A stretch of DNA of 56,897 nt, the filler included, from Platydemus manokwari (lineage: Eukaryota), in NCBI GenBank assembly GCA_037951405.1. It is 5 parts of 5 records of this genome, joined end to end, with 100 filler letters (N's around TTAATTAATTAA, not from the genome) between each part and the next. Parts side by side here need not be neighbours in the genome. Positions count along the whole stretch, not along the records: positions 1 to 9,096 come from JBBMOY011299983.1; 4 more parts are not named here. The stretch is one strand, 5' to 3'. Below the pieces are notes generated by a model, which had not been told where the DNA came from, did no database searches, and was given only the letters and a program-made list of their open reading frames with translations. Shown one piece after another: positions 1 through 9,096 of the stretch; the stretch's first letter is position 1; each line of letters opens with the position of its first letter. Made by a program: the position numbers and the translations under genes.

Positions 1-90
1 TTTATAAAATATTTTATTGATTTATTGATTATCTAATTATTTATAGAATATTTTATCGATTTATTGATTATCTAATTATTTATAGAATAT
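1..90. repeat. 39-bp AT-rich tandem repeat (~2.3 copies, degenerate beyond)
   Basis: Unit TTTATAGAATATTTTATCGATTTATTGATTATCTAATTA is repeated from position 1; related fragments (ATTATCTAATTA) recur to about 195. Confidence 0.7.
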
Positions 91-737
91 CTTGTTGATA
101 TATCATAATATTTATAAAATCATTGTTTAATAATTTATCGATTATCTAATTATTCATGAATTATTGATCAACATAATTGATTTATCTAATTACTCATCAA
201 TTATTATTTAAAATTTCGTAGCACACAATTATTTTTGAATTTTGGTTTTATAATACACCCGATATTGATAAATATTTGTCTTCTCCGTTAAATTAAAGAA
301 CTCCATTAATTGATCGATTAATATCGATGATATGAATTAGCTGAAAATCTAATATTGAATCTTATCTCTGATATGAATTGATTGATGGATGATGTTTATC
401 ACAAATAATACATGTTATCATTTATATATATAATGTTCTACTTATCTATCTGAACCAATAAATATGGGAGAATCATCATGTTTCCCACTAGCCATGTATA
501 ATAGTTGTAAAACATTACGAAATTCTGTTGATGTACTTTTATCAACAAAATCCACAGACCTTAGTTTCATTATACACACAATGTTGGATTGGAATAAATA
601 TTCTAAAATTAAATCACCACAACGTAATTAGTATAAAATAATATCGACAGAAACAAGTGTGTGCGACGGAAATAAAATATAAAATTATTTAATATAATTC
701 TATCAAATCCCGACAGTTATCAATGATTGAAACTCAC

Positions 738-1568
738 CTGAGTGTATACCAAAGGCACGTTAAACTCATTATAAATATGCAAGCTTTCTAGACTAGCTGT
801 AAAGGTTTGTATCATTGAAATGACACTGGAATCCGATTTTAAATATCCAGCTTTCGAGGCTCTTTGAATCAGTTTCGTTGACCACATCAGCGGTATAAGA
901 TAATTGGGCTTCATTGAATTCTTCTCAAAATGTTCAAACACTTCGATTTCTTCATCCATGATCAATTTTCCGTGATATTTCACAACAACTCCATCAGAAT
1001 TTATCTTGTTCATTCTCTCCCTGACCGTAACTGGTCTCGGTTTCTTGAATTTTGGAGTGTGTAGAAATCCAGTTTTATGGCCACCAACATTCACAGAAAG
1101 TCTGTCTTTGATTTTTTTACTGAGACTCATCATGGCCAATATCCAAGATAAATTCATGTAGCGAAGTAATGTTGAGCGAACACTTTTGCATTTCTCAGGA
1201 TCTCCTTCAGTGATAGTTGCTTGACAAGCAAAAGCTGGTTTCGTCATCCATGGAATAGAATTTACAATCGTCCACCATCTACCTAATACTGTGGACACAA
1301 AGAAACCAAGCAGAAAAGATAGCGGTACAATAGCTGCTGCTTTATTCATATATGCTACAAAAGCTTCGAATCTCTTCTTGTGAACAGGATGATCGATTAA
1401 ATAAAACTGATAGAGCATTGTGACGCCGACGTATGCCAGAACGAACCAAACGAAATCGGCCCATAATAATTTCCAAACACTGCTTTTCCAACAAATTAAT
1501 AACTTCAAGAATTTTATTCTCTCATTTAACGAGACAGCGGATAAATATTTCACGGCTTTCGTGTTCAT
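738..1568 (-). CDS. BEST: Bestrophin-family Ca2+-activated anion channel, first coding exon (277 codons); remaining exons lie beyond the left edge
   Basis: From ATG 1568 the translation has LLICWKSSVWKLLW, VPLSFLLGFFVSTVLGRWW, LLRYMNL, IPLMW and VPLVYTQ, all bestrophin hallmarks. The exon ends at CAG|GTGAGT (738/737), directly after PLVYTQ. The 28 codons upstream of 1568 in the ORF track are probably non-coding. Confidence 0.92.
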
Positions 1569-1979
1569 TTGCAGGAAAATTGTGTCAGCATCATAGTTAA
1601 AACTAATCCAATTATTCACATTTCTCTCATTGGATGTTATTTTTAGTAACAAATTCGGACAAATAGGATTTTAATTTTAAAATTTTAAAATTGTAAAAGT
1701 GTTGACTAAAGATTTTTGTTGAGTTTTCTGTACTTGTGTAATCGATTAATGTGAAGATTTGACGAATATTTGACATTACCGGATAATTTTGAAATCGATA
1801 GGGCTTGTATTGAAAAGAAACATTAAAAAAAACCACGTAGTCATAAATGGAGAAATCGTCTTTGTTGTTTTAATGCATCAATGCTAATTATGTTATTGGA
1901 AATATTAATAAAAATTCTTTGAATTAGAATGATTTTAAAAAATTTTCAATGTCGATTGAACTAGTGAAAAATAATAAAT

Positions 1980-1980
<1 letters not shown>

Positions 1981-2016
<36 letters not shown>
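1981..2016. repeat. (AAT)n microsatellite
   Basis: About 12 perfect TAA/AAT units. Similar tracts occur at ~2795-2840, 10230-10320, 11590-11640, 43542-43576 and 56790-56860. Confidence 0.9.
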
Positions 2017-2017
<1 letters not shown>

Positions 2018-3179
2018 TGACGAACAAACATAACCGAAACGAACATAAAATCTTATTGTAATTCTTATTATCTGGAATGGTTTCTTGATGCTTATGGTAG
2101 CTCTATAAAAATAATAACATTTGCCTACTATAATAATATATTATCATTAATTATAGCAATATAAATATAATTATAGTATACATAATAATAATAATTATAG
2201 TATACATAATAATAATAATTATGAAATCACTAATTTTAGTCAATTTTATAAAACACAGGACATTTCCATCTTACTTTAAAATGGATTCTGATGATAATTT
2301 TGCCAGTCGATATTGTTGACCGAATTTAAGAAAACATTTAATCGACGCCACCTCTCCATAATTTGATTTGATAACAAATATAATTCTAAATAAATTAAAA
2401 AAAAATAATAATCAAATGGAATTATTATTATAGACGAATTGGTTAACATAAATATTAGAGTAACATTTTGTTCTTGTTATTGGCATTCATGTACCAGATA
2501 AAGTGGTGACAGTAAAACTGGAACGAGATGATTTTTGTCTGTGAAGATCATGATAATATGAAAACAAATTGAAAGTACATTTTATATCAATGTGAGTAAA
2601 ATAGCCATGGGTTCAAATCATCCCAGAGCGAATTGTCGTGTCATGGATTTGTGATTCTAAAAGTCTCTTTTAAATCAGTCCATTGGTGATTTAATGGCGG
2701 TAATGATGATGTTAGAAATTTTAAAAATGATGATGATGATTTTCTATTGATTGATTAGCCGATTGTTTATTTTACTGGTTGGTTGGTTGATTGATGATGA
2801 TAATAATAATAATAATATTAATAATAATAATAATAATAACTACTTGAATTTACTGCAATGCTTCACGCAGAACAATTGTTTTTGTTTCCTTAAAATTAAT
2901 ATTTTCAAGTATAATTAGAGTTATTTTATTTCATTGGAATCTCAAAGATTAACTAAAGCATTTGTCCATTCATGTAGCTCCATTTATGTTAAATAATTTT
3001 AATTTGAGTTTTAATCTAAAAGGTTTCTTTATAAATTTATCATTGAAGTTTTCCCAGTGAATTCCCATTAATATAAATATTGCGGAAATTTCCTCGAATA
3101 ATATGATGCAAGAAAAATGTAATAAAATCTTTTATAAATCGAAATAAAACTCATAACAAGCATAAAAAATACAACAGTA

Positions 3180-6100
3180 ATGCATTCAAATGATCAGCAA
3201 TTCCTTGATGAGACTGCACTAAATGTTGAACATATCGTTGATGAATCTTCAGATGATTTAGAAATTATAGATTTAAGCAAACACAAATTCGATACTATCG
3301 ACTGGTTATATTCGGCACAAACAAGTTCACCAGGAGAAGAATTTGACTTAGATTTGACTTTTTCATTTAAAAATTTGAACTTTTCCAATACTAATTTGGA
3401 AACATTGATTTCAAAACTCAGTAAACATGGTGATAACAATAATAATGATCGATTAAGATCTATTGATCCACAAGACGAAAATACACTGAATAATTTCACT
3501 GAAATCTTACCGATCACATCTTATGAGCAGACTTCGAAATCATCAATCGGAAATACGAATAAATTTGTTGACGATACAGCAATTAATTCTATTTCTGAAG
3601 AACCAATGGAAGATTATGGAAATACACCGAAACCATTGGAGGAAGGCAATAACTCTAAAACGCATAACTCTAGATACTTCACTTTACTTGCTAGTATCAG
3701 TGAATCTATGGAGTCATTAAATGATTTTCTTTCTCACGAAGACCTGCTCTCAAAAGAAATCAAAGTTATTGAAGAATTCGTTCCATCAAATACAAATTCA
3801 ATCGACATTATTGAAAAAGAACAAGAAGAGCCAATTGATTGTCCGCAAATCGGTTTACCTTTTATAATTATGAGAGAACAATCAAAAGATAATGATCTTT
3901 ACCTCAATGAAAAAGATTCCGAATATGTTGAATTCATTTCTGAAGCTTTGGAAACAGAGCAGAATACAATGCAAACCATTGAGGAAGCCCATAATTACCC
4001 AGGACAAAATCAATCAGAACAGCATCGACATCAACAACAATCTGAAATAACTTGTTCAAGAGTCGACGATCTGATGAAAATTACTGATGAACTGCAAAAC
4101 AAGACAAATAATTGTTTGCCTTTCAAAATTCTTCATAAAGAATCAATAAATAACAATGATTTCAATGAAGAAGTCGTTTTCAAAAATGTTGAAGAATACA
4201 TGATATCAGCATACGATATAATGAAGACAATGGATGAACAACATGCTGAAAATAATTATATAGGAATTGGATTGCCATTCATAATTCTTCGTAAAGAATC
4301 AATAAATGACAATGATTTCAATGAAGAAGTCATTGTCAAAAATGTCGAATATTCTGAAGAAGTCGTTTCCGACAATGTTGAACATTTTGAAGAATACATG
4401 ACATCAGCATACGATATAATGAAGACAATGGATGAACAACATGCTGAAAATAATTATGTAGGAATTGGATTGCCATGCATATTTCTTCGTAAAAAATCAA
4501 TAAATGACAATGATTTCAATGAAGAAGTCGTTGTCAAAAATTTTGAAGAAGTTGTTTCCGACAATGTTGAAGAAGTTGTTTCCGACAATGTTGAACATTT
4601 TGAAGAATACATGACATCAAAATATGATATAATGAAGACAATGGATGAACAACACGCAGAAAATAATTATATAGGAATTGGATTGCCATTCATAATTCTT
4701 CGTAAAGAATCAATAAATGATAATGATTTCAATGAAGAAGTCATTGTCAAAAATGTCGAATATTCTGAAGAAGTCGTTTCCAAACATGTTGAACATGTTG
4801 AAGAATACATGACACCAGAACACGATGCAATGAGAACTATTACCGAACCACAACACATGACAAATAATAGTATAGGAATTGACTTACCTCGTAAAGAATC
4901 AATAAATGATAATGATTTCAATGAAGAAGTCGTTTTCAAAAATGTTGAAGAAGCTGTTTCCGACAATGTTGAAGAATACATATCATCAAAATACGATCAA
5001 ATGAAGACAGTGGATGAACAACACGCAGAAAATAATTATATAGGAATTGGATTGCCTTTTATAATTCTTCGTAAAGAATCAATAAATGATAATGATTTCA
5101 TTGAAGAAGCTTTTGTCGAAAATGTTAAAGAAGTTATTTCCGACAATATTGAAGAATACATGGCATCAAAATACGATCAAATGAAGACAGTTGATGAACT
5201 ACAAAACACGACAAATAATTTTGTAAGAATTGAATTACCTTTCACAATTCCTCGTAAAGAATCAATAAATGATAATTATTTCAATGAAGAAGTCGTTTTC
5301 AAAAATGATGAACATTTTGAAGAAGATATTTTCGAAAATGTTGAACACGTTGAAGAATACATGACACCAGAACACATTGCAATGAGAACTATTACCGAAC
5401 CACAACACATGACAAATAATTGTATAGAAATTGAATTACCGTTCATAATTCTTTGTAAAGAATCAATAAATGATAATGATTTCAAAGAAGAAGTCATTTC
5501 CAAAAATGGTGAGCATGCTGATCGAAACATGGAATCAGAACATGTTGTAATTGAAACTACTGATGAACTACAATACAGGACAAATAATTGTTCCAGAATT
5601 GAGTTATCTTACAGAACTCTTCCTAAAGAATCAATAAATGGAAATAATTTCAACGAAGAAGTCGTTTCCAAAAATGTTGAACATATTAACAAATACATGA
5701 CACCAGAACGCGATATAATGGGAACTATTGACGAACTACAACACATGACAAATAATTGTATAGGAATTGAATTACCTCTCACAATTTCACGTAAAGAATC
5801 AATAAATGATAATGATTTCAATGAAGAAGTCGTTTCCAAAAACAATGAACATGTTGAAGAAGATATTTTTGAATATGTTGAAAAATACATGACACCAGAA
5901 CAGGATGCAGTGAGAACAATTGACGAACCACAACTCATGACAATTAATTGTATCGGAATTGAATTACCTCTCACAATTTCTCCTAAAGAATCAATAAATG
6001 ATAATAATTTTAATGAAGAATTTGTTTCTAAAAATCTCGGCCCTGTAGAAAAATCAAATCTAACAGCACAGGATTCCATTGAAAATATTCAGGATACACT

Positions 6101-7520
6101 GCATCAAGAAATCGATTTTTCCAAAATTGACAAACCCTTCACAGACATTCCTAAAGAATCAATGCGTGATAATCTCACCGACGATGATTTAACTTCCAAA
6201 GATATTGAACTTTGTGAAGAAATCATCTCATCACACCCCAATACAACGCAAAATATCGATGAAGTGCAACAAAAGGTGATTGAAGTTTTAAGAGATGATT
6301 TACCTTCGATTGTTCCTCATCAAGAATCTGTTATATTTATTGAAAATCAAATATCAGCAGAAAATCTTAACTCTACCACAATTAAAAATTCAGAACATCA
6401 TTTACCTCCTGCTGTGAATAAATCAGCACAAATAAAGAATATCGCCACAAATGATCCCATTACATTAAATATTCCTTCCAATATGGATAAAGAAATAAAT
6501 TCAGTTAATGTACATCTTCATTCACCAAAGTCTCAACTAATTAGCTCAAATATGGAAAAAGAAAATTATTTAACGAAATCCATGAGCTCCAATCAGATAA
6601 ACAGTCAGACAATAAAAGAAACAACTAGAGATGAATCTCTGCCCAAAGAAGCTTCAACACGTCTACTGAATTCTCAAATTAATCAAAGCAAATCTCAAAC
6701 AAGAAAACCTCTAGAATTACCAACAATAAAATCGGGTTTGAAAATGCCTTCTGTCTATCCGAAGAATTCAAGTATTTTATCTAGAGATAAAATGATGACT
6801 AACAAAGAAGGAGTTTTAAGACAACCTCATAGTAATAATAACAATGTGAACGGCAATTTTCAGAATGCTTTTAGTGAAATATCCACCACAGATTCAAAAT
6901 ATTCTTCGACTGAAACATCCAGATCTTCTAGCATAATACAAGTTACAAGTTGTAATCAGCAGTATAGCATTTCTAAAACAATGGAATCTGTTGGCACATC
7001 AATCCCAGATGTGCAAAAACCTTTTGAATCAGTTTCCAAGGTCGCTAAAATAAAATCAGGGCTTAAACAACCGAATAACTATCAAGCAGGTGTTAAAAAG
7101 TCAAATCAAAACCATATCCCATCGAAACAAATCCAAACAACTCAATCGAAAAACCTCTCACATATCGCAACTATAAATAATAACCACACCAATTCTGTCC
7201 ATCATACATACAATCGAAAAGCCTTCAATATAGCTGTTTCCAACAGCAACAGTAATTCGTTAAAGATCTCCAACCAAAAGTTGAATAGTATGCAGTCAGA
7301 TAGCAATAACAATACGTTATCTAGTCAATCTTTGTTGTGGAAAGACCCTACCAAAATGGGTGTTTATCGAGCTGTTTTAGAAAAGGAAGAAAAAACAAAT
7401 AAGCTTATGGGTACTGGTCTAATTAACCAATCCATAACCCATCAAAGCATAAAAGCACCCTTTCAAAGAACAAAGCTTCCTCAAGCTAGATCCTTTGGTA
7501 TTCCTAAATCGAAAAAGTAA
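3180..7520 (+). CDS. Uncharacterised 1446-aa intronless protein: acidic N-terminus, 11-14 tandem 52-71 aa repeats, basic Ser/Asn/Lys-rich C-terminal tail
   Basis: A 4341-nt uninterrupted ORF in very AT-rich DNA, from ATG to TAA, with a downstream AATAAA (~7730). Repeat indels are all frame-preserving. No family is recognisable to me. Confidence 0.85.
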   Translation: MHSNDQQFLDETALNVEHIVDESSDDLEIIDLSKHKFDTIDWLYSAQTSSPGEEFDLDLTFSFKNLNFSNTNLETLISKLSKHGDNNNNDRLRSIDPQDENTLNNFTEILPITSYEQTSKSSIGNTNKFVDDTAINSISEEPMEDYGNTPKPLEEGNNSKTHNSRYFTLLASISESMESLNDFLSHEDLLSKEIKVIEEFVPSNTNSIDIIEKEQEEPIDCPQIGLPFIIMREQSKDNDLYLNEKDSEYVEFISEALETEQNTMQTIEEAHNYPGQNQSEQHRHQQQSEITCSRVDDLMKITDELQNKTNNCLPFKILHKESINNNDFNEEVVFKNVEEYMISAYDIMKTMDEQHAENNYIGIGLPFIILRKESINDNDFNEEVIVKNVEYSEEVVSDNVEHFEEYMTSAYDIMKTMDEQHAENNYVGIGLPCIFLRKKSINDNDFNEEVVVKNFEEVVSDNVEEVVSDNVEHFEEYMTSKYDIMKTMDEQHAENNYIGIGLPFIILRKESINDNDFNEEVIVKNVEYSEEVVSKHVEHVEEYMTPEHDAMRTITEPQHMTNNSIGIDLPRKESINDNDFNEEVVFKNVEEAVSDNVEEYISSKYDQMKTVDEQHAENNYIGIGLPFIILRKESINDNDFIEEAFVENVKEVISDNIEEYMASKYDQMKTVDELQNTTNNFVRIELPFTIPRKESINDNYFNEEVVFKNDEHFEEDIFENVEHVEEYMTPEHIAMRTITEPQHMTNNCIEIELPFIILCKESINDNDFKEEVISKNGEHADRNMESEHVVIETTDELQYRTNNCSRIELSYRTLPKESINGNNFNEEVVSKNVEHINKYMTPERDIMGTIDELQHMTNNCIGIELPLTISRKESINDNDFNEEVVSKNNEHVEEDIFEYVEKYMTPEQDAVRTIDEPQLMTINCIGIELPLTISPKESINDNNFNEEFVSKNLGPVEKSNLTAQDSIENIQDTLHQEIDFSKIDKPFTDIPKESMRDNLTDDDLTSKDIELCEEIISSHPNTTQNIDEVQQKVIEVLRDDLPSIVPHQESVIFIENQISAENLNSTTIKNSEHHLPPAVNKSAQIKNIATNDPITLNIPSNMDKEINSVNVHLHSPKSQLISSNMEKENYLTKSMSSNQINSQTIKETTRDESLPKEASTRLLNSQINQSKSQTRKPLELPTIKSGLKMPSVYPKNSSILSRDKMMTNKEGVLRQPHSNNNNVNGNFQNAFSEISTTDSKYSSTETSRSSSIIQVTSCNQQYSISKTMESVGTSIPDVQKPFESVSKVAKIKSGLKQPNNYQAGVKKSNQNHIPSKQIQTTQSKNLSHIATINNNHTNSVHHTYNRKAFNIAVSNSNSNSLKISNQKLNSMQSDSNNNTLSSQSLLWKDPTKMGVYRAVLEKEEKTNKLMGTGLINQSITHQSIKAPFQRTKLPQARSFGIPKSKK
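4110..6170 (+). repeat. Coding minisatellite within the 1446-aa ORF (unit ~156-213 bp)
   Basis: AAAGAATCAATAAATGA(T/C)AATGATTTCAATGAAGAAGTC-like anchor (KESINDNDFNEEV) recurs 11 times; a 12th copy (KESMRDN) is degenerate. Confidence 0.95.
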
Positions 7521-9096
7521 ACAATGATCAATAGTTCAGGCCAGATTCTCTAAAATAATGTTTAATCAAGACAATCATGATTAATATTATTCTTTAATAT
7601 ACAAGCTGAAATTGAATTGAACACAACGTATTTTTCAGTTTAATGTTTCTCAATATGTCTGCGACGAAATCTTAAATCTTATTTTAACATTGTTTCATAA
7701 ATACTAATACAGTATGAAGTATTAATAAGAATAAAATGCACGAACGATCTGTACATTGATATTGGTTTTATTTTGTATTGCCTTTCCTCTTAAAATAATG
7801 GTTTTCGTAGCTTATTTTAACGATTAATTGTGAGGAACATGTTCGTATGAAATCACGTGATGTTTTAAACTCCAAATTTATCTACTAGACTGATATTAAA
7901 GTTTAGTGAAATTATCTCGGGTTCCAATCAACCAATAATATTGGCAACGGTACCCAGCTTTTAAATAATTTTCGGTTTTTACCGGTTTTTTTAAATTCCT
8001 AAGGATTTGATTTGTTAAGTAATTTTAATATTTATTGTGCATAACTTCTAAGGTGCAATAATAGAAACAATAATAATAATTTAAATATAAATAAATAAAC
8101 AGTAATAAACAAAAATATATAATTGTAAAATGATGTAAAAATAATGATCAGTAATTGATTAGATATAAATTAACAAATATTCAATAAATAGTAATTATTA
8201 TTTGAGAAATAACCCGACTTTATTAATGTTTTAATTAAAGGCTATTTTTGTGAACACAAATTTTAATAGTCCCTTGAGCGGAGAGCTGCAAGACCCTTGA
8301 ATTTTAACTTATGATTGTTAGAACCCACAAAATCCGGCAATTGTATAGTTAAGAGAATCGAGCTTACACTAGATTTTAGGGGATTAATAAAAGAGTGATA
8401 GGACGAGCTCCAAGTCAGTATTAATTTAAACGTTTCGTAAAATAATCATTGAAAAATCCATATTAAAATAAATCCGTTAAAATAAGAAAAATTAAATTTA
8501 ATTTAGGACGATTGCCTTGAAAATAACTCCCCTTTTCTCGTTGTGATGATTTTGATAAATTAAAATTGATCATATATAATAGTTCTTATCTTGATTGGCA
8601 GAGTAGTGTCGACAATGATCTATTAACTGTGGATTTAGTTTAGTAGAACGATTATAAAATAATCAATATCTTGAAATAATTGTGGGCGCTTTTCTGACTA
8701 ATGTTTTCTTTTATAGGGATTCTTTTCTTCATTTTTAACGACATATCTTTTTTTATAATTTTTATATTTTATGTTTAGATTCTCAAGCCTTTTTCTCCTA
8801 ATCTTGGTACCCTCTCATTATTTTTCTATTTTTGGTATTAATATATTCAATTTATGTAATTTCTATTTTTGGATGCCTTTGATGCCTGGTTTTCTTGAAA
8901 TTTTTTTATATTATTGTATTATTATTTATCATGGGGTATTTGGTACCCAACAATATTATCACTATATAAACAATATGACAATGCATAATCAAAATCATCT
9001 CACCAACTACTAACAAAGATCATTTTGAAGCTCTATTCATAAGCTATCAAAATCAGTCAACATTGTTTGATTTGTTTATACGCATCATATTTGTTT

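Follow-up and report, generated by a model that had tools for sequence, protein, structure and literature searches.

A previously undescribed, nearly orphan family of acidic tandem-repeat proteins with predicted disorder in a Platydemus manokwari genome assembly

The window analyzed here is a stretch of 56,897 nucleotides, made of five joined parts of the Platydemus manokwari assembly GCA_037951405.1. In its first part (positions 1 to 9096, record JBBMOY011299983.1), it carries a long open reading frame (ORF) coding for an acidic tandem-repeat protein. This ORF is read, with a probability of about 0.7, as a real protein-coding gene of a tiny, restricted family, whose product would be a disordered chain built of two blocks, a long acidic one and a basic one. 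The estimate covers the anatomy of the protein, its relatives, the absence of a known domain, the disorder, the weak purifying selection and the generic two-block reading, and a more specific microtubule version falls outside it. The plan common to the family consists of an acidic N-terminal region, followed by one or more acidic units of ~52-56 residues and by a basic tail. This tail carries two KSGL(K/R)xP motifs, one short helix, an SxIP-type motif and a terminal GIPKxKK. The repeat unit and the protein family are genuinely new as a description: the curated libraries of families and structures lack them, and they are nearly missing from the public protein collections.

The length of the open frame indicates a coding sequence. 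The frame of the repeat gene remains free of stop codons over 1460 codons, compared with at most 153 codons in 500 shuffles of the same bases, which have a guanine plus cytosine (GC) content of 30%. Read in the two alternative forward frames, the array shows 49 and 109 stops. The gene had been called intronless in the preliminary description of this DNA, which holds for the ORF at 3180-7520 itself; the untranslated regions and any upstream exons lie outside this outcome. An AG-ending, polypyrimidine-poor sequence (...tacaacag) is located at 3163-3179, immediately 5' of the start codon.

The unit boundaries of the array were set by splitting the protein at the anchor KESIN(D/N/G)N. This delimits eleven well-conserved units, starting at residues 320, 372, 438, 509, 572, 632, 693, 760, 816, 872 and 936, and about three degenerate ones at the edges, which brings the gene to ~14 units in total (Table 1). 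The core peptide of the unit is LPFIILRKESINDNDFNEE. Tandem Repeats Finder returned periods of 168-213 nt for the array, and an independent repeat finding recovered a 77-nt core in 12 copies with 78-91% identity. In the degenerate upstream region, the first copy of a detected repeat family was located at 3855-3931. The KESIN anchors and both repeat searches thus confirm the eleven conserved units and the degenerate edge units of the preliminary description. Its statement that the length variation keeps the frame is borne out as well: the units measure 156, 198, 213, 189, 180, 183, 201, 168, 168, 192 and 168 nt, all 11 lengths being divisible by three. This variation stems from a single position of the unit, which contains zero to two copies of a 24/33-nt submodule of the EEVVSDNV type.

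At the DNA level, the units diverge by 7-35% from each other. Two subtypes do exist, as had been proposed, but they are arranged more in blocks than interleaved. Subtype A comprises units 1, 2, 3 and 5, with unit 6 as an intermediate, and subtype B comprises units 4 and 7, with units 8-10 as variants; a single B unit lies inside the A block. The most similar pairs are found among units 1-3 and 5 (proportion of nonsynonymous differences, pN, of 0.05-0.09), in the 5' half of the good array. The earlier view that the central units are the most alike therefore applies only if the degenerate upstream units are counted.

Relatives of the gene were identified on other contigs of the same assembly. 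The paralog on contig C137788 encodes 521 residues with four units and the same tail as the window gene, and a partial copy on C1779662 is 68% identical to it. A third paralog, on C1742509, is open over 1020 codons and consists of an N-terminal block, one divergent unit and the tail. Two further pieces, at C1433769:819-1220 (+ strand) and C1619295:5012-5392 (- strand), correspond to the C-terminal region and are likely pseudogenes because they are interrupted by stop codons (2 and 8, respectively). Within this 911-Mb assembly, the DNA of the unit is confined to the window gene and two paralogs. An inverted partial duplicate of the C-terminal part of the 521-residue paralog is located just upstream of the start of that paralog (C137788:3311-3774, - strand, 71-82% identical), which indicates a local rearrangement within the family.

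Outside the assembly, only one relative was found. A profile built from the non-repeat parts and one unit, searched exhaustively against 1.84 billion protein representatives, gave a single match (E 1.9e-21), hereafter P0001, a protein of 686 residues known only as UniParc entry UPI0006070AF3. The profile match covers the non-repeat C-terminal part only, with about 42-44% identity between P0001 and the C-terminal part of the C1742509 protein. In the family alignment, P0001 also carries one unit-like stretch. The C1742509 protein and P0001 have an N-terminal extension of 190-290 residues that includes a conserved block, of which no counterpart was detected in the window. The window gene either has no such extension or has a distant upstream exon.

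All other searches remained empty. The best Pfam-A match of the whole window protein was Imm39 (E 0.6, 10.8 bits against a cut-off of 25), and nothing better than E 2.2 was obtained for the tail, the paralogs and P0001. A sequence search of the PDB with the family profile and with the last 60 residues yielded no match at E values up to 10, and the same search with P0001 returned only chance matches to serpins (E 0.2). A word-index search of 5.8 billion proteins with the whole window protein gave no match, and neither did word-index protein searches with P0001 and with the 521-residue paralog. Nothing was found in viral and metagenome contig scans using the array and P0001 as queries, and a literature search on acidic or intronless repeat proteins of planarians revealed nothing relevant. 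In the Pfam and PDB searches, the earlier statement that no known repeat family was recognized in the unit is upheld. Its description as lineage-specific and undescribed agrees with the single relative among 1.84 billion representatives and with the empty word, metagenome and viral searches. The family is very small and probably restricted taxonomically, to flatworms.

The number of units differs strongly across the family genes, with one in C1742509, four in C137788 and ~14 in the window gene. In the window gene, the first and the last degenerate units can each be aligned with the one unit that C1742509 and P0001 possess. Because these two proteins have a single unit at the place of the array, the simplest reading of the sequences is that the array grew in place from one ancestral unit. 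The oldest copies are located at the edges of the array and the youngest inside, the order expected from unequal crossover. Genes with one, four and ~14 units capture stages of this growth. The origin of the array is clear in this respect: unequal crossover probably amplified the single ancestral unit into the 11 good and ~3 decayed copies of the window gene, and small internal duplications of 24/33 nt probably added the length variation, with every change in frame. Unequal crossover under selection for an open frame, put forward in the preliminary description, fits the in-frame insertions and deletions, the very long frame and the single-unit paralogs.

The distribution of charge divides the protein in two parts. 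The net charge is -151 for residues 1-1100, with the array alone accounting for -99, and +25 for residues 1100-1446. The tail contains 17% Ser, 11% Lys and 4% Pro. Relative to the charge-hydropathy boundary, every region of the protein lies on the side of disorder. Modeling of two or three units had been suggested earlier, and the AlphaFold model of three units, based on an 11-row alignment of unit triplets, has a mean confidence (predicted local distance difference test, pLDDT) of 32.6 and shows no confident fold. For the C1742509 protein, modeled with a 5-row family alignment, the mean pLDDT is 37, and the only confident element is a helix at 76-86, while the N-terminal acidic block reaches 50-60. 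These models are limited by their shallow alignments; they agree with the composition. The window protein is therefore predicted to be mostly disordered. As had been noted for its start, no signal peptide or transmembrane segment was detected by hydropathy: the first 30 residues are hydrophilic (Kyte-Doolittle mean of -0.51), and the best 19-residue mean of the whole protein is 0.84. CLIP-170 has at its N-terminus a stretch, KPSGLKAP, that is similar to the KSGL(K/R)xP motif of the tail.

The tail is under purifying selection when compared with the paralogs, and this selection is weak. The ratio of nonsynonymous to synonymous substitution rates (dN/dS) is 0.35 for the window tail against C1742509 and 0.51 against C137788; between C137788 and C1779662, it is 0.55. 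For positionally matched units of two close paralogs, the corresponding ratio of proportions (pN/pS) is 0.47-0.59. Across 20 units from three genes, only I.LPF, a Leu three residues later and KESINDN are nearly always retained. Overall, selection clearly maintains the open frame, together with the acidity of the protein and its tail.

The codons of the KESINDN segment are very uniform. The 26-nt stretch coding for (R)KESINDN is 85-100% identical across 12 copies (4132-6173) and contains an AATAAA hexamer. Its Ser is encoded by TCA in all 20 units of three genes, a codon that makes up 25% of the Ser codons elsewhere in the ORF. Selection at the nucleotide level for AATAAA within the KESIN codons was considered and rejected, as other conserved columns are equally invariant at synonymous positions. 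The invariance of the KESINDN codons looks like general homogenization rather than a special signal.

Several observations weigh against a functional gene with the structure described here. Among the public runs, a single one contains the ORF, as DNA-like contigs at 14-17x, and it is probably the source of the assembly itself; none of the RNA runs among them contains the ORF sequence. The short contigs of this single run break inside the array, between 4184 and 5806, so that the copy number given here is that of the assembly. Within and between arrays, pN/pS among the units is 0.74-0.9, indicating weak constraint on the unit sequence. Furthermore, the conserved columns of the unit are also conserved at synonymous sites, and part of the core conservation may thus result from homogenization rather than from selection at the protein level. 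The high pN/pS values, the lack of the sequence in the public RNA runs, the broken family pieces at C1433769 and C1619295 and the inverted piece on C137788 would suit a decaying or never-functional ORF, in which a recent duplicate with a neutrally expanded array is becoming a pseudogene. We regard this as decidedly improbable, given 1460 open codons against at most 153 in shuffled DNA of 30% GC, the 11 of 11 unit lengths in frame and the purifying selection on the non-repeat tail against the paralogs (dN/dS 0.35-0.5). It is improbable, too, that the gene is real but owes the number and order of its units to the short-read assembly. The high fragmentation of the assembly (1.99 million contigs) and the break of the k-mer contigs of the public run between 4184 and 5806 speak for such an artefact. 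However, the longest exact repeat within the array is only 62 bp, below an ordinary short-read length, which makes a short-read misassembly of the array unlikely but not impossible. The 7-35% DNA difference between units and the intact frame at every junction argue in the same direction. A dispersed satellite or a mobile element was rejected, as the DNA of the unit is found only in family genes and no inverted or terminal repeats are present.

The composition of the protein also allows other assignments than the favored gene of a disordered spacer or scaffold protein. Acidic nuclear chaperones and nucleolar phosphoproteins have a composition that resembles that of the window protein. With an array of net charge -99, a basic tail and predicted disorder, the product might be a nuclear acidic protein, for example a chaperone of histones or other basic proteins or a nucleolar scaffold, in which basic partners would be bound by the polyacidic array and the Lys-rich C-terminus would serve nuclear targeting or nucleic-acid binding. 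This is unlikely, since no nucleoplasmin, NAP, nucleolin or other Pfam domain was matched, the terminal KSKK/KLKK does not, by inspection, fit the classical K-(K/R)-x-(K/R) signal, and the look-alikes of the tail are cytoskeletal and not nuclear. In peptide precursors, acidic spacers between repeated peptides are typical, and most units of the window gene end in ...LR followed by KES, which creates a dibasic RK between units. A secreted product, be it an antigen made of repeats or the precursor of many peptides released by cleavage at the RK that precedes each KESIN, is nevertheless essentially excluded, as the hydrophilic N-terminus has no signal peptide or transmembrane segment and the dibasic site is not conserved. 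Other units and the paralogs have HK, CK, PK, HN or CE in place of the RK, and no Gly precedes the site for amidation.

For the gene family favored here, a structural, spacer or multivalent-scaffold role is compatible with the predicted disorder and with a repeated core motif on an acidic chain. The basic tail would dock the protein to a partner or a surface, from which the long polyanionic array might project as a spacer. The array would at the same time present its hydrophobic/acidic core motif of ~18 residues many times, which could provide multivalent binding.

The nature of the surface or partner can be proposed only tentatively. The three nearest look-alikes of residues 1000-1446 in a protein language model are clusters of MTUS2-like, AMER2 and NCKAP5 proteins (0.81-0.82). 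AMER2 is listed as a plus-end-tracking protein (+TIP) with an SxIP motif (PMC4834103), and NCKAP5L/Cep169 has been reported as a +TIP that binds the end-binding (EB) protein EB1 (PMC4613824). The context rule for this motif demands [S/T]x[I/L]P without acidic neighbors and with at least one basic residue among the preceding four (PMC4834103). Under this strict rule, exactly one motif passes in the tail of each of the four family members, for a chance expectation of 0.04-0.17 per protein (2000 shuffles of each tail). The joint chance of these motifs is low, but the four proteins are related and hence not independent. In total, [ST]x[IL]P motifs are TKLP in the window protein, SQLP/TQLP and SGIP in C1742509, SGIP and SKIP in C137788 and SKIP in P0001. 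Their setting is a tail that is disordered (low pLDDT) and rich in Ser and basic residues, with a Pro content (4%) below the typical value.

As the preferred specific version of this reading, it is possible, though doubtful, that the tail binds microtubules or EB proteins via the SxIP-type motif and the basic region, by analogy with structural microtubule-associated proteins (MAPs) and SxIP +TIPs. Shuffled sequences attain scores in the range of these look-alikes (0.81-0.82) in a third of cases, and the strict SxIP motifs are found at non-aligned positions among the family members. The conserved terminal GIP is preceded by F, R, S or R, so that it fits SxIP in one member only. Neither the Pfam nor the PDB search revealed similarity to a solved or curated microtubule-binding domain. 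A flatworm-restricted family of microtubule- or EB-binding proteins, anchored by the SxIP tail and with the acidic unit amplified into a multivalent polyanionic projection of more than 650 residues, is an unlikely elaboration. If true, the copy number of the unit would tune the spacing or the recruitment of partners.

Table 1. Features of the repeat gene and its neighborhood (positions in the window; aa, amino acids)
Feature	Position	Strand	Remarks
Complete ORF of the repeat protein	3180..7520	+	1446 aa from ATG plus stop; open 1460 codons
N-terminal acidic block IVDxSSD...DLxxHxFDTxDWLYS...FDxDxxFSF	3222..3380	+	Common to C1742509 and P0001 (alignments, tblastn)
2-3 degenerate upstream units (aa 187-319)	3738..4136	+	First aligns to the single unit of the paralog
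Array, 11 well-conserved units of 52-71 aa	4137..6152	+	Core I.LPFxIL.KESINDN(D/N)F
Example of 24/33-nt submodule duplications	4322..4595	+	Unit alignment
Further submodule duplications	4733-4805, 4922-4976, 5100-5156, 5285-5362	+	
Degenerate last unit (aa 992-1049)	6153..6326	+	Also aligns to the single unit of the paralog
Basic C-terminal region, Ser/Asn/Lys-rich (aa 1100-1446)	6477..7517	+	Conserved throughout the family
First KSGLKMP motif (aa 1184-1190)	6729..6749	+	KSGL(K/R)xP in paralogs
Second KSGLKQP motif (aa 1292-1298)	7053..7073	+	
Conserved amphipathic helix MGVYRAVLEKEEK...	7356..7418	+	Window aa ~1393-1413; aligned C1742509 helix pLDDT 76-86
TKLP, SxIP-type motif (aa 1431)	7470..7481	+	Passes the strict context rule
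C-terminal GIPKSKK	7497..7517	+	GIP(K/T)xKK-COOH in each of the four members
Bestrophin channel gene, first coding exon	720-1652	-	Pfam PF01062, E 2.8e-51

The surroundings of the repeat gene are ordinary animal nuclear DNA, in which neither inverted repeats nor hallmarks of mobile elements are present. The bestrophin exon is oriented head-to-head with the repeat gene, ~1.5 kb upstream of its start. The first part of the window (1-9096) is AT-rich, with a GC fraction of 0.21-0.39. Simple AT-rich tandem repeats (39-nt and 24-nt units, AAT/ATA runs) were identified at 1-152, 1970-2017, 2167-2222 and 2800-2839, where they sit in intergenic DNA and at the end of the contig.

Four distinct mitochondrial cox1 genes, all of full length, are present in the assembly (C1514745, C1389203, C1344449 and C1440324), with protein identities of 64-85%. 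Three of them use ATA at conserved Met sites, in agreement with the invertebrate code, and one uses AAA at the invariant Asn of GGFGNW, as in the flatworm/echinoderm code. Given these four genes, the assembly combines DNA from several animals, such as a worm and its prey or hosts. It includes a flatworm, but the contig of the repeat gene is not directly tied to it.

In comparison with known systems, the family shares with the SxIP +TIPs (MTUS2/TIP150, AMER2, NCKAP5L/Cep169) a disordered, basic, Ser-rich tail, and each member has one [ST]x[IL]P motif without acidic neighbors and with a basic residue just upstream. It differs from them in having no detectable sequence homology and in the variable positions of the motif; its terminal GIPKxKK mostly lacks the Ser/Thr, and the acidic repeat array has no counterpart in these proteins. 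The structural MAPs (tau, MAP2 and MAP4) are built of an acidic, disordered "projection" part joined to a basic C-terminal part. The layout of the window family is similar, with a long disordered acidic part ahead of a basic one, but its repeats are located in the acidic part and not in the basic binding part. The Tubulin-binding repeats of Pfam gave no match in the window protein, its tail, the paralogs or P0001.

Animal genomes commonly encode disordered repeat proteins that are restricted to a lineage. The window gene encodes a protein of this common kind, and it is a modest addition rather than a surprise. Like these proteins, it has an in-frame array grown by unequal crossover, evolves fast under weak constraint, differs in copy number between paralogs and has no homologs beyond a narrow lineage. 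Unlike most of them, it has a long unit (52-71 residues) with a sharply conserved 18-residue core common to the paralogs, and this unit is joined to a conserved tail without repeats, an entry point to function that is missing from most such orphans. Its paralogs of one, four and ~14 units and the candidate docking motifs of its tail make this family more readily interpreted than is usual for orphans.

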